From Mytilus edulis (taxonomy: Eukaryota), in NCBI RefSeq assembly GCF_963676685.1, contig NC_092351.1:64604001-64668000 (forward strand): a DNA stretch of 64,000 bases. The letters run 5' to 3'. Position 1 is the first letter of the stretch. The number at the start of each line of letters is the position of its first letter. The notes beneath the pieces are model-generated. The model saw only the letters and a program-made list of their open reading frames with translations. It was not told where the DNA came from and made no database searches. The translations under genes and the position numbers were made by a program. This document shows positions 30,001 to 63,311 of the stretch, piece after piece.

Positions 30001-33000
30001 AACCAAGAACTACTATGCAAAGTTTCATGCTTTCCTCATCAAGTGAGCAATTCTGCTCTATATCTGCACCAATCGGCAGGACTAATATATCAATATACAG
30101 CTAGGGAATATTTGTTGTTGACCGAAAATATAAGATACATCGATTTAAACTATATGAAAAATAAATAATTTTTGTAAGTTACTTTAATTTCCGTGTCTAT
30201 ATTAAATTTACGAGTACACTATAGGAAGACAGAAAAAGAGAAACGGAAATATACAGGAATACCTAAAGTTTCGTAAGTCATTGCAATGGACCATACATTA
30301 CTTTCATGTCACAAGTTTTCATAGCACTCAGCAAGTTTTGAAACGAATATGAGAGATAAAGATCTACTGCATTTGGGCAAATTAAAAATATGTTAAACAT
30401 CTAACTATTTTATTTTTAACAGATTCACAAGTTTTAAATTTTTTAAACCGTGCATCAATATTTTATTGTTTTTATTTAAATTCCTTATATGTTACGTGTA
30501 TTGATCATTTATTTGTTTAAATTGTGAAGTATATGACTTTAATAAGAATACACGCATTTATATATATAAGTCGATAAAGTTTGAAACAAATAAACGAAAG
30601 CTACATCGATGTTGTTTTGCTTGAGTGATTTACCTGTTAAAAGCTCGGGTCCTAACACGGTTTAAAACGAATTAATACCAGTTTGAAATAGTTTAACGGG
30701 GGCGTGGCCTATTTGTTTGACGTAACTTACCGCCAACTTGAATTAAATTGAACGACTGCAAGCGAATCTATTTGACTGGCATTAAAATGATTTGATATGC
30801 ATTGAAATAAATTAAAAATGATTTTTAATTTTTGTCAATCTTTATCAAATGACGATTAATCTCATTTAAACAGCGTTAATGCGTTTTTGTCCGATCAAGT
30901 TAAATTCGGGTTACTAGTGTGTGGTATTATTGCCAATGATATCAACAGAACTATAAATGAAGTGGTTGTTAGCCATTATAGGCAATTGTACAGCCTTCAA
31001 TAATAAGACGAACCAATACCGTATAGTTGGCTACATAGTCGGCTATACTGTTATATATTTTTTTTATTGAAGGTTGCATTTCTGTAAATATTGACAATGC
31101 AATTTCCCATAGGAACTCCTTTTACGGCTAAAACTGTACCACTTTTACTATGAAGTTTTGAAAAAAATCATATCCTAGAATTGAAAGTTCATATGCACCA
31201 CAATTTTTTTCAAAGGTCAAAATATAGGGCTGTGCGGCATATTTTCAACGTTTATATGCCCTGAACTTCTCAGAGTTAAAACTTACACTAATTTTCTTAA
31301 CTACCCCTACCTCGAATGAAAGGTTACCACAGATTTCAATGTAAACAATATGCACGTGTTTATTTACTGGTAACATTCCCAATTTTTGTCTCTGCGATAT
31401 TGAACACAGAGAGCATAACTGGGAACCAGTATGTAAACAAAATTATTTTTCTATGAATATTCAATTACTCCCCAAAAGAGGCGTGTTTTGAGAAACAGCT
31501 GTATTTACAAAGTGCAACCTGAACAGATAAAGCTATTACTCGATACAAACATATTTTGTGATATTGATTACGTTTGTTTAATTGTAGATATATTTTTTGC
31601 ATGTGTTTGGTTGTTTTTCATCAAAGATAAAACCAACATAATCAGTTTTATAAAGGACAAAATTCTTTTACTACCTACGTTTAATTTAATAAGTGATTTC
31701 GCATTCACTATGTTCACGTTTTCAATGAGCTTTAAACAATAGAATGTCAACAAGCATGCAAACTTACTAGACATGTGAAATTGGGTTCTGATTATAACAT
31801 TTTGTAAGTATGTTTTTCATCTCGAACAATTCAATTAGAATAACGATCTGTAGTATCTATTTATAGTGATACATCTCATTAAGATTGGAATATACGTATT
31901 TCCTGAAAGATCATCAAATTGTTGATATTTGTATATAAGTTACAATCATTATAATAAATATAAAGAAAAAAACACATGAATGTAATATTGGATGATGCAA
32001 ATAAAATATAACAGATTAAAATCGACGACCATTGAATATCGATACGTTGCTGGTGATTGAAATACTATTTGAAGTGCAACAACGTTAACATTTTCACATT
32101 TTATAAATTCAATTTCTTATTCTCATAAGCGAAATGTAGTCGATTCTCATAATTGAACGAGTATCGTTTGAATTTTGAAAACATATGCTTTCCGTAAATA
32201 TCTTTTTATGGTGGTTGAGTGGGATTTAAAAAAAATGATTATCATTTGTAAAAATACATATCTAATTGTTTGAATCGATATCATTACATAAACGGAAACT
32301 TTGTTTATCGATGTTCTTGTCAAATACATTATTATTATCCCCAACCAACATCTTTGATTGATCTTAACTTTCAATTTAAACATTTCCCCACAAACTTTAA
32401 ATGGTACAATAATAGTTTTCTTGCATGACCATTTTTTAAGCTGAATATATCTTCATACATTGTAGTCCTAATAATACACGCTAGGGTTTTCGAACAAAAT
32501 TAAAACGATATAATTTTTGTTCAGGAGAAACATCCAGACTCAATCATTAAAGTATCCGACTGCATATCGTATGATGATAATCATCTCTTGAATGATCCTT
32601 GGTATTCATTGTTAACAAAAATATTTTGGCAAATATTTGACAAATCGTAAATCTTGATAAACAAAAGAAGTACTTCTTTACAAATTTTGTTCTTTCATAA
32701 AACTATCTCCATATTGAATTACAGATTTAAATCCTGTGTTATTACATGACGTATCACACTATTTCCTTGTCAAATTACACAATACACTGAATACGCATCT
32801 ACCATGTCTAATGAAACTTGAATAAACTATCTGATTTGCCAATCTTTTTTTTCCTCCTTTATTATGTACGAAAAGATTTAGTTCACAAATGGAAATTGTT
32901 GCACATAGTCATTGTAAAATAAATCACTTTACTTACTTTTCACTTGTAACGTAATACAGATCTGATTAGAAGCTTGACTGAAATAAAGAATTAGTTCAAT

Positions 33001-36000
33001 GTAAATAATTGTTTTTAAAGAAAATGTGCCAAAGCAATAGCTAATTTTTTTTCGTATGAGTATGAATACTAAAAAAACCCAAAGGTGTGGCTAATTTTGA
33101 ATTATATACTACAAATAATCACGGTATTTTTAAGACAATTAAATTTATCAATTTTTGTTTATATCTTAACATCTCTACCTTTAGTTAGGGATATTTCAGT
33201 GATATAAGTAAAAACATGCCAATTATACAGTAAAACACAACATAAAAGTGAAAATAATACACAAACTGCAAACTCAGAAATCTTCGCACGAATTTCTATT
33301 TTTACATGTTTAGCAATTTGGATACAAATTTTATAAACAAAATCAAGATATATAGATAAAATCCAAGTACAAGCAGTTACCTATAAGAAGAAACTAATTT
33401 ATGGAACATGACGTTATCCAGCGTACAACTAACCCCGATTCATTTTAAGTATCAATTGAGCATCAAAAGCACTATGCGAAACCAGAAACTGCAATCAGAA
33501 CTGCAGACTTCACAGGAGGACATATATCTACTTCTTTTAGTTTGTTGAATATAACAGGTATAATAAATTGCCGAAATTTATGAATTTTTGTTATAATTAA
33601 TTCACTGACGTAAACATGATTAATAGTCTGAAAAAAGGGAATGACATATGTTACGTTTACGATTTTATCATTATTTTTTATATGATTCTGTCGGTCAAAT
33701 AACTGTTATTTTATTTTTAAACGTTGATATCTCTTTTACCTCATACTATCGAAAGCTGTAAAGCAGACCGCATGATTACCAATATCCTTCTCGTCAGGTG
33801 TCCATGTGACATTGACGTACCATCGATCGATGGCTATACCATAGCTAAGCAGCTCCGACTTAATCATTTCTTTTGGAGAAGTAACGTTAATTTCTGAAAT
33901 TCTATAATAAATCGAAAATACTTTTGACAGCTTACATTTATTAAAACTATTTAAAAAGTAAAATCACACAAATACTGAACTCCGAGGAAAATTCGAACAA
34001 ACAGTTCCTAATAAAATGGCAAAATCAAAAGTTGAAACACATCAAACGATTTGATAACAACTGTCATATTCATGGTACAGGCATTTTTTTATGTAGAAAA
34101 TTATGGATTGAACCTGATTTTATAGCTAGCTGAATATCTCACTTGTATAACAGTCTCATCAAATTCCATAATATTGACAACGATACGTGAACAAAACAGC
34201 GACAACGTTTTTTACTGATATGATTCCGTAATAATTCAATTTCAATACGACTATATTGATTGACCAAACAAAGATATAAAAAGGGAATGCATTATTAATG
34301 TAGTGTTTTATACCAAAACTACTATCGTATAGGAGACAATTGACAAATCTTCACAATAAATAGTGCATATTCATTTACAACATTTGATTTGGTAGTTAAA
34401 GATATTTAATGTTTTTAGCTGGACATCAACTTTTCTCACATAAAAGAGGGACGAAAGATACCAGATGGACAGTCAAACTCATAAATCGAAAACAAACTGA
34501 CAACGCCATGGCTAAAAATAAAAAAAAGACAAACAGACAAACAATAGTACACATGACACAACATATAAAACTAAAGAATAAGCAACACGAACCCTACAAC
34601 AAATAATTGGTACAACAAGAAGCGTCTTAAAATCAAAACCAAATATAAGTGGTAAAACATGACCACCACTATAATTAACAGTTCACGGGAAACTTATGTT
34701 TGACCAAGACAACGCAACAAATAATCGGAGGTTAACATGAATGGTTCATACATGTCATGTCTCAGGTCAAATGTTCGAATAAGCATAAAACAAGGAAGTA
34801 ATTCGATTACAATATTAGAGATACTAGAATACACAAGCAAGATCGCCTGTCCGTAACTGAATTAAAGCACATGCGAATTTTTTTTTTAGAAATAAGAAGT
34901 TATGGTGTTATGCCAATGAGACAACTCTCAATCCAAGACGCAATGTTTAACAAGTAAACAATTGTCGGGCAAAGTATGGTCTTAAACACGGAGCCGGACA
35001 GCAAGCTATACAGTGGCCCAATATTTTGCCTAAACTTTTAGTATTAGTATTGTTATTTGATTAATACGCGCTTCTTATAAGTTTTTCTGCTTTCAAAATA
35101 TTTTTGTTTGAATCCGTCCTGGTTTCTTCTACAACCGGATCAAACTTATGAAGATATATATTTTTTGTCAATGATTAAATTAAGTATTGTCAATCATTGA
35201 ATAATGACGAGGTTCAGGTGTTATTATAACAAGTGTTTATAACAAAATCTAAAATCACCGCTTGGTGTTGTGACTAATAGAAGTGGAATATATAGATGAT
35301 GTAACGTTTACCGTTAAAACTATCATTCTATTTTACCAGTATCAGATTTGACACAGAACTTGTTACTAGTAATTATTTGTAATACAAGCAACAAATTTTT
35401 CAAAAAGTTTGCATGGTTTTAGCGTATTATGTTGATAATCGAGTTTTGCTTTGTATTCATCTATCCAGAATATTACATATAAATTGTAATAGGGTAAACA
35501 AACAAGTGGAATAGAGGAAAAGTTAGCAGAAGGAGTTCGTTCCAGGTCATTGACCTAATGCTTTTAATTAGTGTATTTAATTTTGCGACTTATGGATTTT
35601 GTGTTTATTGCATATCATTTCGAAACTCTTTAAAAAATTCTTTACAATTATTTTAGTTTACATAAAGTGCTGGGAATATTGTAAAGACTACTTCTATTTG
35701 ATAAGGTAGTTCATGTTTACTGCTACAATGCCTTCAAGTGAAAAATTGCTGCTCTAAAAAATTATTCGGACTACTCTGTACCGTAATGGACGTTGGCATG
35801 ATAAGGAAAGTTCACATCGACACACCTCTCCCTGTTCCAGGTTAAATGAACAATAAAATTATACAAAAAAGGAAATGTTAAGATACGTGTTTCAATATTT
35901 GTTTTAAAACTTTTAAATTATACAAGTAACAAGATACTAATCTTTATTTTTTGTAAACCACAGACAGAAACATACACGATCCTTTCTACTTTCTATGACA

Positions 36001-42000: not shown

Positions 42001-42936
42001 TGATTACAAAACTAACTTGCATTAAAGTAAAAGAACAGACAAACGATCACTAAAAATAACTATAATCCATACATTCTAACCACAAAAAGTAAAAAAGAAA
42101 CCCAAAAATATTGAACAAAAAAGGTAAAGTGAAAAATAAACGATGAAAACCAAACAGAAAAAAACGAATACACTGACAGAGTTTAATCAGATCCACTGGT
42201 AAAACAAACCAAAACCCATACTGTTCTTTAAGTGCCATACATCACATCCAAATGCTGTTAGACTGATACCACTGAAGGTACCATAAACCCAGCAGTCAGT
42301 GTTTAACTCTTTTGATTAAGGTGGTACCCAACACTTTCACTAAAATTAATTTGGCTCGTTTAATTTTCATAAAATGTTGTCAAAGTATTTACTTTGAGAC
42401 TTTATTAAAAATATAAAAAAATTTTTTTTTTTGAACCAACCGTTTTGTCAGAAAAAATACACTGGTTATATAGCAATTTGACAAACAGAAATTTTGATCA
42501 TTGAGAAGCTTAATATTCTTTTTACAACACAACGTAATTAAAACAGTTAGCTGACTTTACAGAGTTATCTCCCTGATGTATAAGGTACCACCTTAAGACA
42601 GAAATTATTGAAAAATAAACTTGCCACCCTCACCTTGCGACGTTGACCTTCAATAAAAAAAAATCCATTTAGGTCCTTGTTAGTCAAACAAACTATAACC
42701 GAGAAAACACATCATCTTTGAAAGGGCATCAGCAGACCACCAGAATAACTTGAACTCAAAAAAAGCAAACGCCAAAATGCATTTGGTACTGGACATTTTT
42801 AGAAAAATAAATATAATTTTGACCGTACCTGATTATCTATGTGCCTCCATGTAATTGTACCTCCTCGAAAATGGGATCCATAAATACACACAATGTTAAC
42901 TATAATCAACACCGCATTCACAGTGTTGACACACAT
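1..42936 (-). CDS. Gene A: adhesion GPCR (signal peptide + SHFRGG/cadherin-Ig-like module + HormR + GAIN/GPS + 7TM), 3'-partial
   Basis: Exons: 42829-42936, 41323-41570, 40101-40276, 38214-38314, 36936-37198, 33740-33901, 32937-32977, 15178-15374, 9446-9634, 6828-6899, 6155-6263, 5406-5525, 4649-4721, 4053-4167, 3589-3635, 2938-3061, 2072-2175, 588-699, 1-8. All introns are GT-AG, and the phases join into one open frame (2361 nt through TM2). HormR Cys/Trp pattern, GPS 'CGFWDF..WSSFG..TICEYNHTTNFAMLM', secretin-class TM1 and TM2. Confidence 0.9.
588..699 (-). CDS. Gene A exon 18 (ICL1-TM2)
   Basis: HVKNLRNDRSKILINLCVALILSYAIFLSGITRTEDK; tag|..|gtaagt; phase 2-0. Confidence 0.92.
2072..2175 (-). 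CDS. Gene A exon 17 (TM1)
   Basis: PSIHHFPLSLISAIGCGISILCLLVTILIYSVLWR; ttttag|..|gtaagt; phase 0-2. Confidence 0.93.
2388..2615 (+). mobile_element. Degenerate tRNA-derived SINE (V-domain-like)
   Basis: A-box-like TGGCCGATTGA, B-box-like GGTCAAATCC, and central 'ggttttctcagtgcactcc' resembling the V-SINE core. Confidence 0.5.
2938..3061 (-). CDS. Gene A exon 16 (GPS, cleavage site and Stachel)
   Basis: NTTNGAWSSFGSRVVESTDSYTICEYNHTTNFAMLMSPGRT; phase 2-0. Confidence 0.93.
3589..3635 (-). CDS. Gene A exon 15 (GPS start)
   Basis: GDYSTPFCGFWDFGAS; caag|..|gtaagt; phase 0-2. Confidence 0.9.
4053..4167 (-). CDS. Gene A exon 14 (GAIN)
   Basis: DVRAFNGSNDVNSIIADFTIYGTSCSDYSLNIKFEHLL (VNS.I and F.H GAIN motifs); phase 2-0. 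Confidence 0.9.
4649..4721 (-). CDS. Gene A exon 13 (GAIN)
   Basis: GLTGYSSTFYRNISSFFPKYLIING; ttttag|..|gtgagt; phase 1-2. Confidence 0.88.
5406..5525 (-). CDS. Gene A exon 12 (GAIN)
   Basis: VMQVGKAGSDEISVPDRSKTSDSWIADSVTEIKLKKNICS; phase 1-1. Confidence 0.88.
6155..6263 (-). CDS. Gene A exon 11 (GAIN)
   Basis: GSNGVTSLVNTVTEYTNQVNQIINTEATLIVTKDNV; phase 0-1. Confidence 0.88.
6828..6899 (-). CDS. Gene A exon 10 (GAIN)
   Basis: IFGSLCNNLLDERNHESWKELNDK (NLL..N..W..L GAIN-A motif); phase 0-0. Confidence 0.9.
7191..8058. mobile_element. ~870-bp non-autonomous TIR element (Tc1/mariner-like)
   Basis: TIR TAGTCAACAAAAGAAACGATAC(A) at both ends, in TA context. Confidence 0.8.
9115..9305. mobile_element. 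191-bp MITE with TA TSD; related partial copy at about 56641-56815
   Basis: ta|CTGTGGATTCATT..AATGAATCCACAG|ta. Confidence 0.85.
9446..9634 (-). CDS. Gene A exon 9 (GAIN-A helices)
   Basis: LDKLFSGNSDDEFVSTILEELDNITRNNYELRSGDLLTASAILNDIA..QLD (L.SGDL motif); phase 0-0. Confidence 0.92.
10093..10136 (-). ncRNA. Degenerate minimal type I hammerhead ribozyme within a dispersed repeat (about 10060-10360)
   Basis: ca-CCGAUGG-gucu(uaugu)agac-GAAA-c(gcga)g-UC-uggcgu; stems II and III intact; two mutations in the CUGAUGA core. Confidence 0.65.
13348..13440. repeat. Short palindromic repeat built of GACCGTACGCGTACGGTC units
   Basis: Perfect 18-bp palindrome at 13354-13371 and a partial second unit at 13396-13410. 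Confidence 0.7.
15178..15374 (-). CDS. Gene A exon 8 (HormR domain)
   Basis: NANLCGANIDRFNTKWSLTQENKQMTLSCTGEHVGYVSRNCSSGGIWDEPDYSRCISKSMLYIQEQ; phase 1-0. Confidence 0.92.
16031..16435 (+). repeat. Dispersed family 'AAGATGTGGTATGATTGCCAATGAGACAACT'
   Basis: Other copies or fragments at about 2665-2852, 3477-3563, 11545-11840(-), 34895-35020, 40643-40760(-), 60778-61084, 61780-62052(-). Confidence 0.85.
16965..17607 (+). repeat. Left arm of ~640-bp inverted repeat (partner 30280-30919)
   Basis: CACTAGTAACCCGAATTT..GGTCCATTGCAAT is near-identical to the reverse complement of 30280-30919. Confidence 0.95.
17608..18370 (+). mobile_element. Decayed 3' end of a LINE ORF2 (CR1/L2/Crack-type), interrupted by a MITE
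   Basis: Translates FEFAEYLDLL..FRTGNHRLPIATGR*..RQERYCVLCDSQE / ..FHYILNC, with stops and frameshifts. Confidence 0.75.
17780..18044. mobile_element. 265-bp MITE with imperfect TIRs and AGAT duplication
   Basis: agat|GGAATAGGATCCCAGTT..AATTGGGTCCCCGTTCC|agat; removing it restores the LINE codons caa gag ata gg. Confidence 0.7.
19908..23684 (-). CDS. LINE ORF2: AP endonuclease + reverse transcriptase + RNase H + CCHC finger
   Basis: WNCQG, LQET, GDFNAH, SDH (APE); YRPIAL, DFQKAFD, GTPQG, FADD (RT); FTDGSK, DSLSAL, WIPSHVG..GNESAD (RNase H); CINC..ESVEHYMLNC. Likely ATG (MAAHF) at 23684; the open frame extends to 23828. Confidence 0.96.
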   Translation of the reverse strand: MAAHFTVLHWNCQGLKAHAPEFLWHLGSVKHRPDIICLQETFCSNESDFIDIQGYMLAAFSTRGTKRGGTAIYCKNGINFTKVSLISKLEISAINIIYNKKRLLIVNIYDPQSDTVQTDYDTLINQFDTEFILCGDFNAHHNLWGSERIDTKGRELANSILYNNICLLNEGLGTRLNPTNLKTSCIDLSFCSLNLAHRIQWSVDQNSTFNSDHFSISLKIDIKVINSEENNSFKWNFKKADWKNFSKACNERISDNYISDNIENSNTRLTTELIDIATQFIPIKKFRNKTKPCVPWWSDQCTKAIKERNKARNKARHTGKGHDFIIYKEKNKISQKVLQDTQDIYWKNYCNTLNDNSNISDLWYNIKKMLGKISSKKEIPALRACGHFLTNTIDKANYFAKKFVEVSSSNNYDNEFKKHKSTVEEQEINTFLKYYKENQDCFNEKFTLQEFKDAISDTNDSSPGKDKTSYIMFRHLSDKTLNIFLLFLNKIWFLQEIPKDWKHSVVIPCLKQGKDSSDPLSYRPIALTSNFNKIMEKMVNNRLRWFLEKNNLYNPNQSGFRKNKNTLQQCIRLDNEIHKTFAKKYITVGVFIDFQKAFDMLWKHGLLKKMVNFGIKGNLLAYVNNYLTSRTLQVKINNTFSETYFVENGTPQGSCISPTLFNIMVNDLSTCLQNCEISQFADDGAIWKSGSCIKFLQKKIQLDLDNICKWCSTWGFKISPSKTVAMIFTRRNNINISLQLGNHTLEIVKEIKFLGLIFDRNLTWHNHIQNLQTKCLKVINCMRVLTGTRWGATSNTLRTIYISLIRSKLDYGCEIYNSASFSNKKCLDKIQNQALRICTGSMRSASLKALQVEMGDPPLEIRRQSLIAKAFLNMTSFDNLHPAKAAVNDTFIFDYYSKNVKRKPFSITARDFLAQNNFSTECIYNYSECPCPPWHIEKSLVKTQLHDKISKKDLPHLIKSEAEILIDSEYSKHLQIFTDGSKDPHGNTSCAYVVPELKIKKGFKLPNYISIFMSELMAIFVSLLWLEDFRPIKTVIFVDSLSALQAIRAPIFKVKNQILYDIHLILNSLKKGGSEIIFEWIPSHVGVMGNESADLQAKNALNLDNCIDIIPLFKEDIKTVCKNFLKNSWQQDWETNKDRSLFKIIDKVNFQIIIPKLTREKEVLLFKLRTGYIGLNKHLNKIGVVTSNLCINCNQIESVEHYMLNCKLFNLERKILFEKLKKSNVTDFSLKNLLKGYNFAPIYEYVLSTKRLHYVNNT
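23773..25038 (-). CDS. LINE ORF1: gag-like nucleic-acid-binding protein with three zinc knuckles
   Basis: CFKCQGYGHMQNEC, CVRCGGAHTTPNC, CINCNGEHPASNKDC; ATG (MDDSQ) at 25038. Confidence 0.93.
   Translation of the reverse strand: MDDSQHFTGTGYEVDPLEEYVHNLQDTHVDTPHKNFDSISVRSGTDSEVSTSEYEAAHDWQTQRHKKRKINISPGLKTYSESVQSTIKKAPTRRRLEVKKTVSKAKKFFAVVTCVDTEIKLGLKNPILIQKLFNKTVGIIKTLNKTKTGNLFVECFDVNQFNELKKLNKLGEWEIRVNIPKIMSTSVGCIYRTPSDISIDQVKEALEAYNVIKVEEMFFYDKVKKQKVRSATLKLYFNTPELPERVNLGFTSYKVKIFVKKPIQCFKCQGYGHMQNECSNKEICVRCGGAHTTPNCDKPPKCINCNGEHPASNKDCPKRIENIKIITKVAKEKCSYKEARTEVKHEIKKQDIVHRPKTKSPLPKEHTEIEDLLVFIALLLKKLPAIKEENAQFIYITDLVKKVFGFEIQPQNLTKRFTELI
25262..25530 (+). repeat. Two tandem ~132-bp units
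   Basis: ATATTGTGTATTGA..GAACGCGGACCTCGATGAGAACACCTGGATTGAAAGTTTGC.. starts at 25262 and 25394. Confidence 0.9.
26130..30084. mobile_element. Non-autonomous TIR DNA transposon, Academ-like
   Basis: ata|TAGTCCGGCCGATCGGTG..CACCAATCGGCAGGACTA|ata: TAG..CTA termini, 3-bp TSD, about 150 bp of imperfect TIR with repeated AAGATGGC/AAAATGGCGGC motifs. Confidence 0.72.
26771..29640 (+). pseudogene. Decayed Gypsy/Ty3 gag-protease fragment
   Basis: Broken gag-like ORFs with an RS/SP-rich end; retropepsin motif SMIVDTAAMITLV (D at 28948) and 'DDVILRLVIL'; many stops; no RT or integrase seen. Confidence 0.72.
30280..30919 (-). repeat. Right arm of ~640-bp inverted repeat (partner 16965-17607)
   Basis: ATTGCAATGGACC..TTCGGGTTACTAGTG. 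Confidence 0.95.
30920..31064 (+). repeat. Near-identical direct copy of 15761-15904
   Basis: TATTATTGCCAATGATATCAACAGAACTATAAATG..GGCTATACTGTTATATATTTT occurs at both sites. Confidence 0.9.
32937..32977 (-). CDS. Gene A exon 7 (41-nt end of module)
   Basis: QASNQICITLQVK; paralog of 53620-53660 with the same length; phase 2-1. Confidence 0.88.
33740..33901 (-). CDS. Gene A exon 6 (Ig/cadherin-like)
   Basis: ISEINVTSPKEMIKSELLSYGIAIDRWYVNVTWTPDEKDIGNHAVCFTAFDSM; 162 nt, as in paralog 55469-55630. Confidence 0.9.
33953..34200 (+). repeat. Dispersed family 'AAAAGTAAAATCACA.AAATACTGAACTCCGAG'
   Basis: Other copies at about 44052-44333(-), 57566-57755, 40797-40930(-), 45440-45690(-), 58617-58960. 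Confidence 0.8.
34443..34600 (+). repeat. Dispersed family 'AAGAGGGACGAAAGATACC'
   Basis: Other copies at about 1889-2062, 48168-48320, 16760-16900(-), and 60640-61197(-), the last split by the previous family. Confidence 0.85.
36936..37198 (-). CDS. Gene A exon 5
   Basis: EKCILTYNATGTTGMYAVALQIEDF..LSSIPIQFLINV..QTIIAKGF; phase 0-2. Confidence 0.92.
38214..38314 (-). CDS. Gene A exon 4
   Basis: VQDEDGDVIRCRWALTYHECDSVCKKLSYSVLNK (DxDGD); phase 1-0. Confidence 0.9.
40101..40276 (-). CDS. Gene A exon 3
   Basis: YEGYNWINLEEGGLAWSLLSTANLTIREDIAKVNSPPISNIPPVIRLEYGCFYSLSLP; phase 2-1. Confidence 0.9.
41323..41570 (-). CDS. Gene A exon 2
   Basis: QIDITYKLSFRGDTSNLFCNEYDSGDLVEGEGTLDCYRGCWLKLVPLMSFYCIAFSEEEGWIYGQRTLNVTLPKVLDNIYQF; phase 0-2. 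Confidence 0.9.
42320..42592. mobile_element. Kolobok-like MITE with TTAA TSD; other copies at about 4421-4615 (partial) and 51719-52005 (diverged)
   Basis: ttaa|GGTGGTACC..GGTACCACC|ttaa. Confidence 0.82.
42829..42936 (-). CDS. Gene A first coding exon (signal peptide + SHFRGGTITW)
   Basis: MCVNTVNAVLIIVNIVCIYGSHFRGGTITWRHIDNQ|gtacgg; hydrophobic leader ending IYG|SH. Confidence 0.85.
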
Positions 42937-45900: not shown

Positions 45901-48622
45901 TAAGTAATATATGCATAGGTAACAAAGTGTTATCATTTGTTATTAAACGGTTCTATTTGAAAGTGAACATGACATTTTACCTATTTGCTCATTCTCAATT
46001 GGGCGTTTGAAGATATATAAATCTAGATATTTGTGACAATCTTCATTTCTTTGATTTTTAATCTGAACTATAGATATATTTCTATCTTAACTGTTCCAAG
46101 TTCATTAAAGCCCCTGTTTTGAACTATTAAACATAAGTTTACAATTTTTTGGGCATATGAGTTCGAACAATTTTCCGAAAACAAGTTTTCGATTACAAAT
46201 GTATATAATATCCTTTCGACGGTTATCATTCAACTCATGTATATCATTATCTTCACTTCAAAATAGAATGTTCTGCATACAAATCTATTAATAATTCTTA
46301 TATGGCGTGCTGCTTTCGCTTTATGAATAAACTCATGCTCTAGATCCAATATTTTTTTTGTCACATGCTTATATTGACTACTGCAGAATAAGGAATTTTA
46401 TTAACTTAAACATTTCCAAACTCTGAAATGATGCACATGTTGTTACTCACTATCGCTCGGCCATAAATAATCACGAAAATAATGCCTCCCCATGTTAAAA
46501 CTACTATACAATATAGCTTGCATCATTTGGTTCTTAAATTTTCTATGTTCAGTGGTTAATGATTGATATATAAAATGAATACACCAGTATGTATATATAT
46601 CCATCAATTCAATACCACCTATTTCTAAATTTATTTTTCTCTCGTAACATACACTAGATACGCAATTACACCTCCACTTTTCTTAAAAGCGTTTCTATCT
46701 TTTCTTTCTTTTATGAAGCCTTCAATTTGAAGTATATACAGTTGTAGGTTAACGATTCCCAACCTGTATTCGACGATAAATAATCTTTTATAGTGCTATT
46801 CTCTGAACTGTTTGTTATTTCATTGGTATATGTAGCCGTAGAATTTAATGTTTCCGTTTTCATTAAATCCTTTACAATACTGTTATAACAACCTTACTTT
46901 TAACCTTGCTTTTGTATTAAACTTGGAGGAAGTGCCTAATAGTCTTCATGGTAAGGGGTTCGTCAATGCTTACATAACTGCCTACCAAATAATAACCTAC
47001 CACCAGTGGTTCCCCATAAACTGATTTAAACAAACTAAGTTGATAGATTAATTGTCGGTTGTTAATATCTTCCAAAGGAAAATATCTTATACATGTTCAA
47101 GACTAGAACATATAAATACAACGGGAAGGTCATGTGACAAAGGTCGATGAAATTTCATTATCGGAGTACCCATGCCAATCGCGATCAAATCCGTTTGTTT
47201 TGATAATATTCAAAAAATAAAAGAAGCTTAAAACACATTAACAGTATAAGCTATATAGATCATTTTTAAAAGATAACAGTCCTTGAAAACTACAGAAACG
47301 TGATAACTGTTTAGTGTACATGGTGTATAGGATATATTAACATTATGCATGCATGTAACCCATTTATAACGATTCAACCCCACATATGTGTCCATACGAC
47401 GTAATTGAACTTCAAAAGCCAATATATAGTTGCTAGTGTGCGCAAAAAAAGTGTCTTTTTACAATACGCCAAAACGTTTTGATTCCCAAAACGGGTCTGT
47501 ATCAAGCATACACGGCCCTTTTTGATGATATAGCGCTTTTATTGACTTATACATGTATACTCGCTTTGCTCTTTCGTCTTTTGTACGAGTCGAATTGTGA
47601 CTGGAGAATAGAAATATGTTCAGAAAGTTAGTAACACCTTTTGCGGAGGTGGTGCTTTCTATTGAATAAGCGGGGTGTAAAAGTGCGCAGCAACGCCAGG
47701 TCTGACGGAGCATGGTTATTTCATAATCCTGTGTATACATGTACTTAAAGATAGCGCCTTTAGAATATATTTACCTTTTGTATACATTATTAACTTTTTT
47801 TTGTCTTGAATACGCATATATTATTTGCCCCTGGACGTTAAGCAATCACAAATTATTCAATTTATTGTCTTACATGGAAACGATGTAGTTACACTAATCA
47901 TTAAGCAAGCAATAATCAGTCAATCTCTAATTTCCTGGATTTACAGCAAAATTAAATCTGTATTAAAGGTTAACTTGTATGAACCTTTTTGAGAGGTAAT
48001 TTGCATGCAAATCTTGTTATAACATTCCCGTTTTACTGTCGGTTAAAATCAATAATAGAAGGATTCGATCTCGATGCAACCGGTACCGAACTACAATGCA
48101 TGTATTACAATCGTGTTCATCGTTTTCACAATAAAAATCTTTAATAATTTTGTATTCGTTATGAATAAAAGAGGGACGAAAGATCCAAAAGGGCCAGTCA
48201 CCCTCATAAATCTAAAACAAACTGACAACACCATGGCTCAAAATGAAAAAAGACAAACAGACAAACAATAGTACACATGACACAACACAGAAAACTAAAG
48301 AGTAAACAACACTAACCCCAATGGATTAATTGTAAATGCATTGGCAACGCAGTATTGCTATTCATGTACAGAATCATGTTGAGATCATCAAGATTTCCCC
48401 TGTAAACTCGGGCAATAATATTTAATTTCCACAGAGGTAATGCATGGAGTTTCAAGAATACGCATCATACAGATTAATTCAACAGAAAGCATTGTGATAA
48501 AAAGAAAACAAAACACCTGAAAAAAAATATCCCCCTGATATTCTAATAACTACACATTTTGAATTTTAGATATGCAAAATTCAGTCACAATGTTTTATTA
48601 TGTTTAAACTTAATCCATATAA

Positions 48623-48777
48623 TCACATATACAGATGATCGTGTGTATCAATGGAGCCTCCCGGGCCTTTGATAAATGAAACTAAACTTTTAGTCAGCAC
48701 TCCAGTCATTATTACAGATAAAACCAACCCAGCTGATATGAAAACAACACTGAGTACATAGCTTGTATTGTCAGCTT
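48623..48777 (-). CDS. Gene B terminal exon (TM + cytoplasmic tail)
   Basis: tattatag|EADNTSYVLSVVFISAGLVLSVIMTGVLTKSLVSFIKGPGGSIDTHDHLYM*; phase 1; AATAAA about 24 nt after the stop (48594-48599). Confidence 0.78.
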
Positions 48778-51211
48778 CTATAATACAAAATACATAATAC
48801 AAAATGATATCTAAAACAAAGCATTGGTTAACATATTTACTATTGTCGAATTATGTGTTTGCCTGTTCCTTATTTGGAGCGGTATTACAGTGATTGTCGT
48901 TGGTTGATGTTTTAAATATATTTTGTTTGTTTACTCTCGTTGGTCGTTTATTGCTGATTGCAGTATGTGTTATTTGTTTACTTTTGTTGACGTAAATCAG
49001 GCCGTTGGTTTTTAATAATGGGTTGATATTCCTGTAACCGTTAACTTATATATTTGTCTAATAAGGGATATAATTGTTGTCTTTGAGACAACAATCCAAA
49101 TCTTCAATTTGACATCAACTATCTTGTATTATTTATGATATGGCAACAAACATATATTATCCAAACAAGGACAGATTTTTTCCCGGTTTATGAAACAACA
49201 TTAAATTTATTGAAGTTTATATTCATGATAGTCTTAGTTCTTTTCTTTTTCTCTTGTATTACATGTATAAACATGATTTAGAAACATGATGGATATACCA
49301 AATACAGTGTTTCTTTTTACAAATATAATGGTTTTGCATCGTGCATAATTTCATGCCATATACAGAATTATCTGTTTCTAATGTGATATACGCATCAAGA
49401 CTTACTCCATATACATTTTTACTACTCTGATTTGCATTAAAAAACAATAACAGAGATTTGATACTGTCTTATATAATGTTTACCTGTTTCACAATGGTCA
49501 CCAGTACGTGTTAAAGGACATACACATGTGTAATCAAAGAGACCATCCACACAAGTTCCCCCATTGCGACATGGTAGATCCTTTAATTTGCAGAAATCAA
49601 TATCTGTAATACAGCACAAAAATATCTGAATACGAACTGTCATACGATAATACATATGTACTGCAATGTACAAATAACGTTATCAAAAGCTCAAACTATT
49701 TTTTGAATTTAGTTCACAACCAATAACATTGCTTGGATGTATTGAATAGGACTGTGATAATAAAATGCTTTTTCTTTGAGAAGTACCGGTGTATGATCTC
49801 TTTAAAAGTGGAACACATTATACATTTTATAATATATAACTGGTTAAAATAGGAATTGCAAAATGATCATTAATAGTTTGATTAGTAGGCATTAATTAAA
49901 GAATAAAAACATCAAAAAGATGATAGCATTGCAGATTATTTCGATCGTGTGTTGCGTCTTTATAATATATCAATGTTTAATAGTTAAATCCTGGTATTGA
50001 TAACATTGTTAACCTTTGCTCTTTCGACAGTAAAGAGGGCTAACATATTTTCTTATTTGTTAACAACACAGCAGATTGAATGTCAATCATTAGATATTTA
50101 GAACAGAATGAGTGACAATTCTTAAAATGTACAAAGTCGTGTAATACAAACCAAGTCTGATAGCTTTACCTTGTTTGAGTTCAAACATGTGATGAGTTAG
50201 CAAACTTACAAAACATTAAAACGTTCTAAATTACTCGAAATGTTTGCCATTTTAAACTAAATCCCTACTCTTGGCATACGTTTACCTGATTCGCAGTGAA
50301 ATCCAGTGTGGGAAGCTGGAAAAATGCAACTGTAATTGAAAACGCCATCAGCACATGATCCGTTGTTCTTACACTGCAAAAAGTGTATTATGATATTTCT
50401 CCACTCGAGACAGTTACATTTTATTATTTAAAGCGCGAGGCTTGCAGAGCCCTTTAAAGAATTAAATTCATAACTTTGCCTGTATAATTTTAGATATCGA
50501 TTTCTGTGATGGTGTTAAACAACGGATCATGTGCAGATGGCGTTTTCAATTACAGTTGCATTTGAGAGAGTGGAGAAATATCGTAATACACGAGTTATAG
50601 TGTCGGAATCTGTTTCTCTAATGCTTTTTATCGTTCTTTTTCAAAGATTTTCAGAAATGGTGCTCTTTATATGCGACGTCATCAAGCAAGGCCGCCTTTT
50701 TTCATGACGACACAATAGGAAAATTGAGAAGAAAACAAAAAATTTCGACGTCATAATCAAATTTCGACTAATCATTTGCCGAGAACAGATTTTTCACTAG
50801 TGAGGATAAATATTTTTCTCACACCGGTCAGGAAATGTAAAAATACTACAAAAAATTTCTCAAAACTTAAGAGGAATTCTCTGTTATCATCACATTATTA
50901 CTTCTTCCAATGATGCCTTTCTGTGAGAATATTATTTTCTTTAAATCGATACTGGTCACTTATGCCTCAAATGCTAAATTATTGACGCTATGATTGGATT
51001 AATGCTATTATGTGTTGACCCCTTTGGATCTGTTCTAATCAGTTATGTATGATTTCTGAAGTCATTCATACAAGTTATTGCATATCATTGACGATTTTTC
51101 TAAAAAACAGAAAGATATCGGATCTACGTTAAAGAGTTAAACTGCAAAGGTGCTGGTTTTCAACTTGACAAGTTTGATACTAATTAGAAAATTATGTGAT
51201 TTACCAAATAT

Positions 51212-51243
<32 letters not shown>

Positions 51244-54200
51244 TTTATTCTCATAAAACCATGCAAGTACAAAGGTTACAGAGAAGTTGAAAAATAATAT
51301 ACATAAAAAAAACAAATTATGCATTTAAAATGCATAAAATTCAAAACGATCAACGGGTTGTTTGTGATGTTTTTGAAAACCATTACATGTACCGATCAGA
51401 TTGACGATCCAGTATGTGAAGTAGAAGCAAAGTTACTAATAATAAAAATCTTCTAACTTACACGAAATGTTTGCCACTTTTAACTAAGTCCCTACAATTA
51501 AGCATACGTTTACCTGATTCGCAGTGAGATCCAGTGTGGGAAGCCGGACAAATGCAACTGTAATTGAACATACCATCAACACAAGATCCGTTGTTTTCAC
51601 ATTTAACACCATCACAGAAACCGATATCTATTAGGATATAGGCAAAGAAATGAATAAAAGTTATGAATCGAACAATAGCACTGTATTGCAATGATTATGC
51701 ATAGGGTGAAACGTTCGATTTAAGGGGGTGTCCAACATTCTAATTAACAAAGACTTGGATCGTTAAATTTTCATAAAGTTTTGCAGTATACTCACTTTGG
51801 CCCGTTTACAAAAATATTAAAATTTCTAGAAATTTTAACCGGTCATTATTAAGGAATAATTTGATTGGATATATAGCAGTTTTACTAACACAAATTTTGA
51901 TCTTTGAAGTGCTTGATTTCCCTTATTTAATTTTACATGTTTGTGATAACAATACTAAACCATTTTTTAAGAATTTACTCCCTAAAGTGTGTTGTACCCC
52001 CTTAAGGAAAAGTCTTTAATAAAAATAGTATGTATTATATTAGCTTTTGTATTTGTTTTAATGTTGTATCGTCAATACAGAGAACGATATCATTATCTTC
52101 AATCAATATGAGAGATATATCGGTAGTAGGCCTACTTGTACACGAATCAACATTGATCAGACGAATTACCATGATTACTCAAAGGAATTTTCTGTTATCA
52201 CATTATTACTTCTTCCAATGATGACTTCAGTAAAAATATAATTTGAAAATAATTTATGCTGGCCACTTATACTACAAATGTTAAATTATTGACGTTATGA
52301 TTGGTTTAATGCTATATTGGTGACCCTCTTTGGATCTGTATTAATCAATAAAGTAAAATTTCTGACGTCACGTCTAACATTATTGTTGAAGTAATCCATA
52401 ATGAATTGCATTTGATCGGTTCTACAAAACAGGAAAATAACGGATCAGTATTTAAGAGTTAAATTTATAAACTGCAAGGGTGTTGGTCTTCAACTTGACA
52501 AATTTGATATTGAATAAAAAATGATGTGATTTACAAAAAAGTAAAGACGGTCAGTAAACTCGCTAAAACGGGTTGTTTGTGAATTTTTTGAAAACTGTTG
52601 CCTGTTCAGATTGACGACCCAGTAAGCATGGTAAGTGTAGTTGTAAACTAACTTATAATAAAAAGCTTCCAACTACCGCGACGTGTTTTCCATTTAAAAC
52701 CAAATGCTTACACTCTTGACATTAGTTTACCTGATTCGCAGTGAAATCCGGTGTGGGAAGCTGGACAAATGCAACTGTTATTAAACAAACCACCAACACA
52801 TGTTCCACCATTTTCACATATAACACCATCACATAAATCTATAAAACATAAAACATAGCAATAAATAAATATAAATAACTGAATACATCCATTGTATGTA
52901 CATGGATATGAATATTAATAAATGTTCGCGTTTAGGAACGATCTGTTATACAAGAGATTCTTGGTATGTTTTAAAGAATAGGTAATAATGGGCAAACACA
53001 CAAAAGAATAGAGAAAAGTTTACCAAGAAATTAAAATAAGAGAACAAAATGGTGCTTTAATACATAACATTCAGATATTATTGCGGGAGTTTCATTAAAT
53101 ATTGTGACTGGGTAAGAATATGGTAAATCGCATTCTCATATCTAATACATACATTTGTACTCAGTTGTTCGCGAAATCACGATCATGATTTATCTTGAAT
53201 ATCTTGTTCCTTCACCAGACGTCGCCATAAAAATGCACGCATGAATCAGAATTTAAGTAAAGAGACGGAATGGATCATGCAACCAATTTGATATATTGTA
53301 TGGTCAAGTCACAATCTAATTATGATAATTGAATGTATAAAGGTTCAGAGAATTTAAAATAACATTGGCGTACTCAATTATAATTTTGGTAAATAGGTTG
53401 CTCTTATTCAGACATGCATCGCTCTGGTACATGGTTCTTGTTTAGGAAAGTCATTTATTAAATAAATACAGGTGTACGGGTATCGTAACAACTCCTTTGA
53501 TACATATGTTGACTACATAACCGTTGATTACTGTCAAATAATGATAACTTTATTTTGTCGTGTTGAAGAAAAGAAACATAGTAAACTTAAGACATACATG
53601 ACATAGTACATATACTTACCATCTACTTTTATGGAAACACATGCTTGGTCAGAGGCTTGTCTGAAAATAATGTCCTCTTTTTTTAGAATGTGATGTATTT
53701 TAGGGTATGCATTTGATTATTATTTAAAGGTTATACTCCCTTTACTTATCAATAAATATTGATTAACAATAGTTGATCGGACATAAACAACAAATGTCAC
53801 TAAACACAACTGATATTCACTGGTAGATAAACAGAAATTTGCAGTGGTTATTTTGATTCTAAAATCATCTGAAAAGTCTGAACAATGAATTTTTTATGGA
53901 TGCTCATACTTCCAGTTAAATCAACTCGTGAAGAATATGAAAACCTACTAAACTATAACCTTTTTCTTACCATTCATATGGTTTAATTTATTGTTGATAT
54001 TCGTCAAAAGGTTTTCAATGACATTTATATGTATTATTAATTTGATAGCATTTATTTGTAAATAAGTAAATTTGTTTGAAAATTGTTTTTAGAATACCTT
54101 TTGTAGGATCAAAAACCAATAGTAAAAATAATTGATTAAGCCCTCGCAGCGACCTAATTTTTTGCACTGCTACCGCATAAAGCAAACACAAATCAATCAG

Positions 54201-57200: not shown

Positions 57201-60200
57201 AACCTGTTGTTGAAGATATGTCGACCAAAAACTGTAGCGGAACACTGCTTAGCGGTGTCTCAGTGTCGGAAACAGAATAATCTTCAATCTGTAGTGCAAC
57301 AGCATGCAAACCAGTACTCCCCGAGGCAGTGTAGGATAATATACATGAAGTCTGAAAATAATAAATACATTCGAAATTAGTAAAAATCATGAATAATAAA
57401 AATATTTCCTGTATTTTTTAAATATTATCAAATTGCAACATACAATACAGTGTGTCTCCCATTCATCTCACTCAATAATTTATGAAGTTATTCCTCCACA
57501 TGAGGAACACGTCTCTCATATATATCTGTGTTGACATCAATGAGCATTGATATGGTCATAATCATAAAAAGAAAAATCACAAAAATACTGAACTTAGAGG
57601 AAAATCAATTCGGAAAGTCCATAATCACATGGCAAAATCAAATAACAAAATGCATCAAAAACGAATGGACAAGAACTGTCATATTCCTGACTTGGTACAG
57701 GCATTTTCAAATGTAGAAAATGGTGGATAAAACCTAGATTCTATAGGGCTAACCCAAATTAACTGTCGACGAAACTTTACAACTTGGAATTTCTAAATCC
57801 TTTCTACCGAATAGATTACCTTAGATGTTTTTGACAAAATTTTAGGATTTTTTGCTCCTCAATGTTTTTTTAACAATTCAACTTCGTATTTTATTTGGCT
57901 TTTTTAACCTTTGTTTCATTCGATCTACACTGATGAGTCTTGTGTGAGGAAATACGCGTCTGTCGATATTATTACATTTTAATCCTGATATCTGTTTTAC
58001 AATGTTTTATGAGTTTTTTTTTACTAAATTACCGAGTTACCAATGATATTTTCCAATAATTATTGTTCTGCATATTTTTTGGAGGATATCATACATGTCA
58101 CTGAAGGTGATAAAATGAGACCACGTGAAACGTGTTTTCTTCAGTTAGTTGCGTTTACCATGATTTGCTATACTAAACATTTTATTTTTTTAAATACTTG
58201 TTGCAAAACACACTACCTTGCCTTTTTTTTTTTTTTATATATAAAAACAAACTTACATGTGCTAATAGTTATTGAAGGTGTGACACATTTTGCACACACA
58301 TGTAAATATATAATTGCATTATAGAATTTCATCTATATATAACTAAGAAAATGCCTAACAAATAACATGTATAACTTGCCTCGTTTAAAATTGCTCCTGG
58401 AAATGCTTCACAGACACCATAACATTCATTACTCTGTGAATGATTCATGTTATTCATTATATTAGCCCAGCGACATTTAACAATGTCTCCATCATCGTCT
58501 TGCACTGCAGGAAAGCATTTTTTTTTAAATCTTAATAATGTTTGAAGTTTTAACAAACCTATATGTTTTTTGCAATCAAACTTAAATTCAAAGACCAAAA
58601 AAAAAAATGACCGGTATACCATTTCTATTTAAATGAAAAAGTAAACTGATAAAAATATCGAACACTTTTGAAAACTCCTTGTTTATTTGAGAAAAAAAAA
58701 GAAAAAGATCAAACACATAAAAAAAATCAAACACGACTGTCTTTTTGTAGATTTCGTGCAAGCATATTCTTATGTGGAAAATGCTCTTAAACCTTCTTTT
58801 ATACCTAATAATTTTTTTTACGTGTACTACTTTCGTTTGTCATTTTATTATATGGAAACATGTATGAGCAAACAAATAAATATAATAAGAAAAACATGTC
58901 AAATATTTGGGTACAGCAGTCAACATTGTGTTATAATCTCACTCACTATAAAACAAAATGGCGACAAAGAAAAACAAAAAGGAAAGAGTATGCAATATTA
59001 TTAAACATTCAATTATTGAGGTAAATAAATTTCCAATGAAGGCAACAGTAGTATACCTCTGTTCCTTAGTCGTACACATTCTGTGACAAACAAAACTTAT
59101 GCAATTTGGTTAATATTAATAAAGCTTAAATTTTGATTGAAAACGACTGATTTATTTAAACTTTCGAAAAAAAAACGTAGATTTAATAAGAGTGACTCCT
59201 TATACCTAACAACTGACACATTCGATCTTTATTAACTTACGGAACTATATTGTAAGTATGCGACTTCGACTATTCAATCAGATATATTTGCATGCATGTT
59301 GTTATCATTAAAAATTGAAAAAAATCTGATGAAAACTGTAGATGCCAACCAGTACTCCCCGTGGCAGTGTAGGGGAGAAGTATAGATGCATTTAACTCAA
59401 TTATAATGACTGATTGGTTGACCAACTCAAACAGACAAACAAAGGTAATTTTTTAAATAGTGCATTATTTTTGTATGTTGATATTGAAACAAAAAAAATG
59501 TCAAAAAGAATGCAAAAATATGATACTAGGCAAATTAAAGTTGACGTTTCAATTCTGAATGCATTTACACTACAAGAACAACGGTTAGGGTCATGTGCGA
59601 CGAGACAAAACAGTTTTTATTTCATATTCTAAATGGCACTTTTTATCATTATAATTTGGTGAAAATATGAACTGCAAAATAAAGATTGAAGACATATAAT
59701 GATAATGGTAATTTCATATATATTCATTAACGACTCATGTATAAAAAAAAAAGACATTTAGGTTACCTGGTATTGTAAGTGAATAAGAACACCCATACTT
59801 AAAGCGAACAATTGGTTGCATGGCAGAAATAGGTGAAGTATTTATTTTGCCAGTATCGTTCCTAATAGAAAGATTTGCAGTAACAAGCAATATCCAACTA
59901 CCTCTGCCAACTACAAGGGTACTTATCCAACAGCAGCTGCTATACCTGCAAATATGTATAAATATATACATAAACAAACGAACAATTTCTATTTTTTATT
60001 AATATTTTTGATCGATTTATGTCTCTTATATTGCTGCCTTGCGGAAATGTTCCTTATGTCGTAACTACAATACCGTTTCCATTTTCACAAATGTGACCTT
60101 TCGAGTTATAAAGTTGAGAAAGGAATGTGGAATGTGTTAACTTGACAACAACCCGACCAGAGAGCAGACAACAGCCGAAGGCCACCAATGGGTTTTCGAT

Positions 60201-63200: not shown

Positions 63201-63311
63201 CAATGTTCCTTCTCCATTCAATATGTCTCTATTTATAATGTTGCTCTCATTACACATGTGACTTACGGAATAATCTCTACGAAATGCTAATCTGTATGAT
63301 ATTTCTATTTC
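48623..63311 (-). CDS. Gene B: single-pass type I membrane protein (SHFRGG-family module + 3 EGF + TM + short tail), 5'-partial
   Basis: Exons: 63058-63311, 59767-59945, 58380-58504, 57074-57351, 55469-55630, 53620-53660, 52731-52838, 51514-51627, 49484-49603, 48623-48777. They join to 1536 nt in frame, ending TGA. No signal-peptide exon was found in the window. Confidence 0.87.
49484..49603 (-). CDS. Gene B EGF exon (last)
   Basis: DIDFCKLKDLPCRNGGTCVDGLFDYTCVCPLTRTGDHCET; phase 1-1. Confidence 0.92.
50286..50564. pseudogene. Disrupted EGF exon: 3' part on minus strand (50286-50373), 5' part with its acceptor inverted on plus strand (50474-50564)
   Basis: Minus piece CKNNGSCADGVFNYSCIFPASHTGFHCES|gt has a Cys>Phe change. 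Plus piece ttttag|ATATCGATTTCTGTGATGGTGTT.. has an internal deletion. Confidence 0.8.
51215..51243 (+). repeat. (GATA)n microsatellite
   Basis: About 7 tandem GATA units. Confidence 0.9.
51514..51627 (-). CDS. Gene B EGF exon 2
   Basis: DIGFCDGVKCENNGSCVDGMFNYSCICPASHTGSHCES; phase 1-1. Confidence 0.92.
52731..52838 (-). CDS. Gene B EGF exon 1
   Basis: DLCDGVICENGGTCVGGLFNNSCICPASHTGFHCES; phase 1-1. Confidence 0.92.
53620..53660 (-). CDS. Gene B 41-nt exon
   Basis: QASDQACVSIKVD; ttttcag|..|gtaagt; phase 2-1. Confidence 0.88.
54750..55430 (-). mobile_element. 5'-truncated I-group LINE remnant
   Basis: NKLHKIKP..RKDQCVISRCRIGH..THEYLL..PQCLTCNC*, then a 3'UTR ending in a (CAAT)n tail. Confidence 0.82.
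55469..55630 (-). CDS. Gene B Ig/cadherin-like exon
   Basis: ITEIVTVSPIGMIKTGILPYGSSGTEWYVNVTWTPSSSQGGSHIFCYTAVNSIG; phase 2-2. Confidence 0.9.
57074..57351 (-). CDS. Gene B exon (AVALQIED)
   Basis: TSCILSYTASGSTGLHAVALQIEDYSVSDTETPLSSVPLQFLVDI..; phase 0-2. Confidence 0.92.
57921..57967 (+). ncRNA. Degenerate minimal hammerhead ribozyme, same repeat family
   Basis: aca-CUGAUGA-gucuugugugag-GAAA-uacgcg-UC-ugu; core intact; stem II damaged. Confidence 0.6.
58380..58504 (-). CDS. Gene B exon (DDDGD..CRWA), GC donor
   Basis: VQDDDGDIVKCRWAN..ECYGVCEAFPGAILNE|gcaagt; phase 1-0. Confidence 0.87.
59767..59945 (-). CDS. Gene B exon (CCW..NTSP)
   Basis: YSSCCWISTLVVGRGSWILLVTANLSIRNDTGKINTSPISAMQPIVRFKYGCSYSLTIP; phase 2-1. 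Confidence 0.92.
62713..63000 (+). mobile_element. Helentron-associated (HINE/pearl-like) non-autonomous element
   Basis: Repeat-like core followed by a (GACA/GACG/GAAC)n microsatellite and an A-rich end, as in bivalve pearl/CvA-type elements. Confidence 0.55.
63058..63311 (-). CDS. Gene B first visible exon
   Basis: EIEISYRLAFRRDYSVSHMCNESNIINRDILNGEGTLACYHGCSG..YCTDYSVDENWSAGQR..FQF; paralog of 41323-41570; phase 0-2. Confidence 0.9.

Follow-up and report, generated by a model that had tools for sequence, protein, structure and literature searches.

The 64,000-nucleotide stretch of Mytilus edulis DNA analysed here (assembly GCF_963676685.1, contig NC_092351.1, positions 64,604,001 to 64,668,000; hereafter the window) carries the same type of protein cassette in two neighbouring genes, A and B, both on the minus strand. 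In all likelihood these are two independent same-strand genes of a large, shuffled family, in which one cassette is mounted on different anchors. In B, the cassette would be held on a stalk of EGF exons of phase 1-1, followed by a single transmembrane (TM) helix and a conserved tail of 23 residues. In A, a 48%-identical cassette would sit on the HRM-GAIN/GPS-seven-transmembrane (7TM) chassis of an adhesion G protein-coupled receptor (GPCR). Exon shuffling at a phase-1 hinge probably gave rise to the two architectures, no later than the common ancestor of Mytilus; subsequently the GPCR form would have multiplied in tandem and the EGF stalk would have changed its copy number. The cassette itself is a unit of ~340 residues comprising a signal peptide and three beta-sandwich domains; it is encoded by seven exons and ends in phase 1 after an exon of 41 nt. 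An initial annotation, made from the letters alone, had already described a shared ectodomain on two anchors in two separate genes, and both parts of that description hold: A has its own ATG, and B has a stop, an AATAAA signal and an RNA end.

The exons of the two cassettes match one another in order. When the open frames of B were used as tblastn query against the A half of the window, five exons gave significant matches: exon 1 (B 63311-63060 with A 41570-41325; E 1e-19, 45%), exon 2 (59959-59744 with 40290-40078; E 6e-18), exon 3 (58505-58374 with 38315-38208; E 7e-7), exon 4 (57375-57097 with 37222-36947; E 2e-21) and exon 5 (55629-55471 with 33900-33742; E 2e-14). The sixth pair, the 41-nt exon, was found by a splice-site search and lies at 53660-53620 in B (QASDQACVSIKVD) and at 32977-32937 in A (QASNQICITLQVK). 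By splice-site reading, the lengths of the six exons in B and A are 254/248, 179/176, 125/101, 278/263, 162/162 and 41/41 nt, and their phases are equal in the two genes (0-2, 2-1, 1-0, 0-2, 2-2 and 2-1). The one-to-one correspondence of six exons, with identical phases and two equal lengths, which the initial annotation had proposed, is therefore confirmed. Its count of 26 shared residues among 55 in the 162-nt exons appears in tblastn as 26 identities over 53 aligned residues, and the outer limits that it drew, 63311 and 32937, coincide to the base with the start of B exon 1 and the end of A exon 6. Since exon 1 of both genes begins at an acceptor, an upstream exon was looked for, and a seventh homologous exon (exon 0, with ATG, signal peptide, the string SHFRGG(T/I)ITW and a phase-0 end) lies upstream of both sets. 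Summed by exon and with exon 0 included, 156 of 326 aligned residues are identical between A and B (48%), and the joined frames of both cassettes contain zero stops in a local check. Past the 41-nt exon, the same tblastn comparison found no similarity between A and B, so the break in homology falls at the phase-1 intron where it had first been placed. Throughout, exon pieces were searched singly; joined models served only for the local frame and stop check and for identity to the RefSeq protein P0170, and beyond those checks the natural database proteins P0170, P0011 and P0157 were used in place of spliced models.

Gene B can be followed from its signal peptide to its polyadenylation signal. 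Exon 0 lies past the end of the window, at the window-equivalent positions 64477-64355, and encodes the ATG, the signal peptide and SHFRGGIITW (M..SHFRGGIITWKQSGTK). It is followed by exon 1 (63311-63058), a 100% match to P0170, exon 2 (59945-59767), exon 3 (58504-58380), exon 4 (57351-57074), with the motif AVALQIEDY..PLSSVPLQFL, exon 5 (55630-55469) and the 41-nt hinge exon 6. Exon 3 of the cassette contains a near-invariant V.D.DGD..CRWA motif, and in B it ends at a GC donor (GAG/GCAAGT, 58378-58380); the RefSeq protein needs the identical junction. Downstream of the hinge stand three EGF exons of phase 1-1, namely a (52838-52731), b (51627-51514) and d (49603-49484), and between b and d a decayed EGF copy at ~50427-50287 is skipped; it is without a phase-1 acceptor, has lost one cysteine, and is absent both from a 1740-nt RNA contig and from P0170. 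The last exon (48777-48583) encodes a hydrophobic helix of 22 residues and the 23-residue tail TKSLVSFIKGPGGSIDTHDHLYM, and contains a TGA at 48625-48623 and AATAAA at 48599-48594. The resulting 11-exon model, GC donor included, is identical over 552 of 552 residues to the Mytilus edulis RefSeq protein XP_071124120.1 (P0170). Kyte-Doolittle windows of P0170 exceed 1.6 only at residues 3-23 and 505-537 of 552, and this hydropathy predicts a type I single-pass membrane protein with a signal peptide, one TM helix and a cytosolic tail. Its EGF modules score above the Pfam cut-offs (hEGF 38.0 bits against 29.3; EGF_2 29.2 bits against 22.1).

RNA reads and contigs were aligned over positions 48300-53700 of the window, that is, over the 3' part of gene B. 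The 1740-nt contig (depth 17, ~99% identical) joins exon 5, exon 6, EGF exons a, b and d and the TM exon, with the junction of exons 5 and 6 at a loose end of the contig, and every intron that it skips has GT..AG ends on the minus strand. It stops at 48583, 10-16 nt past the AATAAA, and a second run yields the same 3' part and stops at 48592. Raw RNA-seq reads carrying the same species label also show the joints 51627>52731 and 52838>53620. Gene B is transcribed, spliced as modelled and separately terminated. Within one B intron, two segments (50291-51014 and 51196-51376) are covered extremely deeply by RNA from either strand, in alignments full of mismatches and loose ends; the signal is repeat- or transposon-derived and does not represent B exons, and it overlaps the decayed EGF copy. 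In addition, backward RNA joints occur among the EGF exons (51627>50286 and 51627>51514). The number of EGF repeats in B-type orthologues ranges from two in M. coruscus through four in M. trossulus to five in M. galloprovincialis, with three plus the decayed one here. Together, the backward joints and this spread of two to five repeats across species suggest copy-number variation of EGF exons among individuals, or else misplaced reads from paralogues.

Gene A begins with its own exon 0 at 42936-42829 (ATG at 42936, signal peptide, SHFRGGTITW and a phase-0 end), with in-frame stops upstream. The cassette continues through exons 1 (41570-41323), 2 (40276-40101), 3 (38314-38214), 4 (37198-36936) and 5 (33901-33740) to the hinge exon 6, all on the minus strand. 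The intron after the hinge is inflated to 17.5 kb because a 14-kb element, which makes up most of it, lies inside at 16965-30919. This element has terminal inverted repeats, of 361 nt (98%) at 16965-17325 and 30559-30919 and also of 200 nt (95%), and nested LINE open reading frames (ORFs) belonging to a non-LTR retrotransposon on the minus strand (an endonuclease-reverse transcriptase ORF at 19911-23840 and a gag-like ORF at 23776-25071). Beyond it, a 197-nt hormone-receptor domain (HRM) exon at 15374-15178 scores 30.0 bits with the Pfam HRM profile (cut-off 26.2), and its phase-1 acceptor fits exon 6. The GAIN, GPS and TM exons of A run in the same order as their counterparts in the M. californianus adhesion GPCR XP_052078407.1 (P0157). 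With P0157 as tblastn query, the GAIN exons were placed at 9637-9443, 6905-6828, 6266-6156, 5529-5404, 4773-4648 and 4166-4029, matching its residues 434-668. The GPS exon at 3060-2938 reaches 37.9 bits with Pfam GPS (cut-off 22.5), scored on 2905-3099 of the minus strand; in its C-x-C, tyrosine takes the place of the second cysteine. The exons for TM1 to TM7 match residues 705-955 of P0157; TM1 (2232-2071), TM2 (725-585) and the start of TM3 at the window edge are within the window, and the TM3-TM7 exons lie just outside it. Scores with Pfam 7tm_2 come from the related proteins P0004, P0054 and P0301, and A itself is placed by its collinearity with P0157. By these matches, A appears to be an adhesion GPCR (class B2), with a GAIN domain ending in the GPS and a secretin-type 7TM.

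A and B are not alone. The 254 kb read around the window contain a local array, on the minus strand throughout, with at least six family-type genes in the order F, E, D, C, B, A. Gene F has the cassette with an EGF exon after the hinge, and gene D has the cassette on an HRM-containing adhesion GPCR. Gene E combines the cassette with two HRM exons, GAIN and 7TM, and is named 'adhesion G protein-coupled receptor L4-like' in RefSeq (1093 aa). Gene C, between B and D at the window-equivalent positions 76821-103397, is an HRM-GAIN-7TM gene (XP_071126876.1, 641 aa) with no cassette exons upstream. Two features of paralogue E (197266-197045 and 163336-165777, window-equivalent) stand out: Pfam counts three HRM stretches on protein P0301, and exon 1 is without the conserved C..GC cysteines of the cassette. 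Downstream of A, at the window-equivalent positions -11928 to -11804, an exon-0-like sequence with a signal peptide and HFRGG, 100% identical to P0011 over 12 residues, gives a hint of one more member of the family. Genes A, B, D, E and F all keep the 41-nt hinge exon, and the next exon, either HRM or EGF, is always entered in phase 1.

The family extends far beyond this array. Pfam scans of single exons gave nothing significant; the wider family was reached only by a profile of exon 4, which has at least 18 copies in the M. edulis genome, 13 of them outside the local array; the profile, built from 17 genomic copies, retrieved 696 cluster representatives at E<=1e-3. In complete proteins the exon-4 match falls at about residues 210-300, which places the cassette always at the N terminus. 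What follows it, according to Pfam scans of the relatives, is highly varied: GAIN/GPS/7tm_2 with or without HRM, EGF repeats, EGF plus ZP, SRCR plus ZP, ten Sushi repeats plus HRM, TSP1, chitin-binding CBM_14, and in Nematostella giant proteins with CARDB/RHS. The sources of the cassette include Mytilus spp., Mercenaria, Crassostrea, unionids, Lingula, Nematostella, Orbicella, Antedon, Patiria, Branchiostoma and rotifers. Moreover, the same HRM-GAIN-7TM chassis, 62-77% identical, carries leucine-rich repeat (LRR) heads in the Mytilus proteins P0304, P0309, P0310 and P0312; going by these domain arrangements, heads as well as anchors have evidently been exchanged in this family. The conserved phase-1 hinge, the many C-terminal architectures and the LRR heads on the same chassis form the signature of exon shuffling, and a shuffling process at this hinge that is old and family-wide appears well supported.

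Trees and identities bear on when the anchors of A and B parted. The A cassette is 59% identical to that of E and 56% to that of D, as against 48% to that of B. In a tree of exon 4, A, E and D group together (97/94), and B lies outside with its M. coruscus orthologue. In a tree of 336 columns from natural full-length proteins, the B lineage is sister to all mytilid cassette-GPCRs (96/92), the GPCR clade is itself supported at 97/90, and the CBM_14-type proteins branch next after these two clades. B orthologues with EGF, TM helix and tail were found in M. coruscus, M. californianus, M. galloprovincialis and M. trossulus, and the last exon of B is 69% identical between species, with the tail conserved. 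Since the B lineage is sister to the GPCR clade and has orthologues in four Mytilus species, the anchor swap is real but old: by these trees it is older than the sampled Mytilus species, and neither A nor B is the other's closest relative. The initial annotation had exon shuffling at the hinge produce the two proteins side by side. The shuffling at the phase-1 hinge stands, but not as a one-off event that made this pair, given at least 18 copies in the genome, an A cassette nearer to E and D, and an old swap. A two-gene duplicon, with F-E and B-A as copies of one unit of an EGF-type and a GPCR-type gene, was also considered and rejected; A and E are sisters (59%), but no such tie joins B and F (49%), F being nearer to A and D.

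In five Mytilus species, B-type genes are found near GPCR-type genes, as judged by accession order (consecutive or near-consecutive), shared contigs and one chimeric model in M. trossulus. The accessions concerned are XP_071124120 and XP_071124121 in M. edulis (CAG2198994 and CAG2198997 in an older assembly), XP_076070855-858, 860-867 and 870 in M. galloprovincialis, XP_063416333 and XP_063416335 in M. trossulus, XP_052078407/8, 413/4 and 422-432 in M. californianus, and CAC5400900 and CAC5400905, on one contig, in M. coruscus. The chimeric model is the M. trossulus RefSeq protein P0287 (XP_063416333.1, 921 aa; aligned on window positions 3588-64477), in which B-type exons, up to and including the TM exon, are followed by exons 2 and 3 and by GAIN exons of the A type. 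This model proves that B-type and A-type genes are adjacent in M. trossulus. However, the model skips A exons 0, 1, 4, 5 and 6 and the HRM exon, and it thus looks like a prediction artefact, which it probably is.

The nature of the cassette is indicated in part by structure prediction and by a remote Pfam match. An AlphaFold2 model of the M. coruscus orthologue of B, computed with 47 relatives, has pLDDT >90 over residues 30-370 and is all-beta, with three sandwiches. Domain 3 (residues 256-367), the only domain resolved, is Ig-like (Z 9.7, rmsd 2.2 over 89 residues in a wide VIA search). No Pfam match to the cadherin family was found on any exon or relative scanned. Single cassette exon pieces gave no significant Pfam match either, B exon 1 alone reaching E 0.07 with SIBA-E_N. 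On longer sequences, this family (PF24907) aligns to the first ~115 cassette residues; on P0170 the alignment spans profile positions 3-110 of 119 and scores 21.6 bits (E 2.2e-4), below the gathering threshold of 28.1 bits. The M. galloprovincialis orthologue of B reaches 27.6 bits, P0142 (29.3) and P0001 (39.0) pass the cut-off, and 8 of 47 relatives match at E<=0.01. From these mostly sub-threshold alignments, domain 1 of the cassette may be a remote relative of SIBA-E_N. NCBI names several family members 'integrin beta-like protein B/C', and it does so because SIBA-E_N aligns to the start of the cassette. In the literature, one Mytilus 'integrin beta-like protein' turned out to be a true integrin beta; elsewhere the bare name appears in a list of genes down-regulated under challenge with the microbial patterns lipopolysaccharide (LPS), peptidoglycan (PGN) and poly(I:C). 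No functional study of the animal cassette head domain was found in the literature searched.

Several other explanations of the two genes have to be weighed. B might be a co-regulated decoy, ligand or co-receptor of A, the two cassettes binding each other or competing for a ligand, which is the functional pairing that the initial annotation had raised. The closeness of B-type and GPCR-type genes in five Mytilus species, with P0287 spanning both, the position of the B lineage as the closest non-GPCR relative of the GPCR clade and the conservation of the short B tail between species (69% over the last exon) would all suit such a partnership. Nevertheless, we think it unlikely: the two cassettes are only 48% identical, A is nearer to E, to D and even to F, and in an array of at least six genes the choice of one pair is arbitrary. 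Conserved linkage, which the initial annotation had named as a check on the pairing, is kept across five species, but these belong to one genus, within which it is expected for any tandem cluster. A bolder version, to which we would likewise give only a slender chance, makes a working unit of the EGF/TM form (B, perhaps F) and the GPCR forms that have stayed next to it across Mytilus. The single-pass protein would bind the GPCR cassette or compete for its ligand and so tune signalling, and the Sib-like head would be an ancient adhesion domain common to the substrate receptors of amoebozoans and the surface receptors of animals. It is a good deal harder to join A and B into one gene, be it a single long adhesion GPCR with two cassettes or a regular read-through transcript, although they share strand and order, only 5.7 kb separates the B stop from the A ATG, and P0287 strings B-type exons together with exons 2 and 3 and GAIN exons of the A type. 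TGA and AATAAA stand in the last exon of B, where the RNA contigs of two runs end; A has its own ATG and signal-peptide exon with in-frame stops upstream; EGF exons end in phase 1 and A exon 1 starts in phase 0; the M. edulis RefSeq set holds B as a separate protein of 552 aa; and P0287, with so many A exons skipped, is artefact-like. Their adjacency and identical exon structure could also mean that B is a young tandem copy of A, or the reverse, with its 3' half replaced in place. The trees contradict this, with A grouping with E and D and B lying outside with its M. coruscus orthologue, and B-type orthologues with EGF, TM helix and tail exist in four other Mytilus species, so that recent duplication is highly improbable. 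Finally, B could be a pseudogene in decay, or a product without function that rearrangement of the cluster left behind; one EGF copy has decayed, and EGF number varies by species. This is barely credible, and it is contradicted at the RNA level: the frame of 552 codons is unbroken, splicing is canonical, several runs contain B RNA, and the orthologues are conserved, tail included. The initial annotation would have counted B as a pseudogene had it been unexpressed, and both RNA contigs and spliced reads of B are present.

The reading that we prefer, two independent members of a shuffled family, also has points that weigh against it or parts of it. In gene F, too, an EGF exon follows the hinge, although its cassette resembles those of A and D (52-53% identity) more than that of B (49%). 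The anchors may thus have been swapped more than once, or the ancestor may have been of the EGF type. As to direction, the swap could have run from EGF/TM to GPCR or the other way. The database searches retrieved no protein identical to A. The GPS site of A reads ...CEYNH-T-TNFAMLM, in which His and Thr are kept and Leu is replaced by Thr relative to the usual H-L-T/S; autoproteolysis at this site may be impaired and is, from the residues, uncertain. P0287 gives the only hint of occasional read-through from B to A. With regard to the cassette, Foldseek with the whole model returned only generic Ig and cadherin arrays at a TM-score of ~0.15, and the cadherin matches were no better than the Ig arrays. 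The DxDGD motif of exon 3 suggests a metal site, and the cassette is possibly Ca2+-dependent, but only by extrapolation from the motif; likewise, we only infer that the cassette is a surface recognition or adhesion head.

If A and B are independent genes as proposed, B would be a non-signalling surface protein that displays the cassette, and A would turn engagement of its own cassette into G-protein signalling via the GAIN/tethered-agonist route. This is the usual route of signalling for adhesion GPCRs. The genes are already known in RefSeq, B as an 'uncharacterized protein', and exon shuffling and tandem expansion are textbook processes. A and B nevertheless offer a clean case of how surface receptors are assembled, with one seven-exon head on an adhesion-GPCR chassis or on an EGF/TM stalk in a single cluster. 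The head domain is widespread (bivalves, a brachiopod, cnidarians, echinoderms, amphioxus and rotifers) and only partly modelled by Pfam. Unless the pairing is confirmed at the bench, the value of the case is descriptive: a well-documented, ordinary one with a mildly interesting head domain.

Among known systems, the first to compare are the Sib proteins of Dictyostelium, which are type I adhesion receptors with an extracellular VWA domain and cytosolic NPxY talin-binding motifs (PMC9197732). The N-terminal domain of SibA-E ('similar to integrin beta') may have a remote relative in the first domain of the animal cassette. Unlike Sib proteins, the animal cassette proteins are without a VWA domain or an NPxY tail, and they have two extra beta-sandwich domains that Pfam does not model; in B, a Pfam scan of P0170 gave no VWA match, and NPxY is absent from the tail. 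On domain content, the animal cassette proteins may have one domain in common with Sib proteins, but they are not Sib orthologues. The second comparison is with adhesion GPCRs that have an HRM-GAIN/GPS-7TM core (ADGRB/ADGRL-like according to NCBI). Gene A has their canonical exon order, but where others have TSP1, olfactomedin/lectin or LRR domains in the distal ectodomain, A has the Sib-like three-domain cassette, and its GPS site, H-T-T, differs from that of usual adhesion GPCRs. The third is with mosaic proteins that follow Patthy's phase-compatibility rule, under which shuffled animal modules such as EGF, Sushi, TSP1 and SRCR are of phase 1-1. Like these, the cassette has a phase-1 end, after which come EGF exons of phase 1-1 or an HRM exon entered in phase 1, and the number of EGF exons varies by species, as is expected for symmetric exons. 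Unlike the insertable 1-1 modules, however, the cassette is a fixed unit of seven exons with mixed internal phases at the extreme N terminus, a 5' 'head'.

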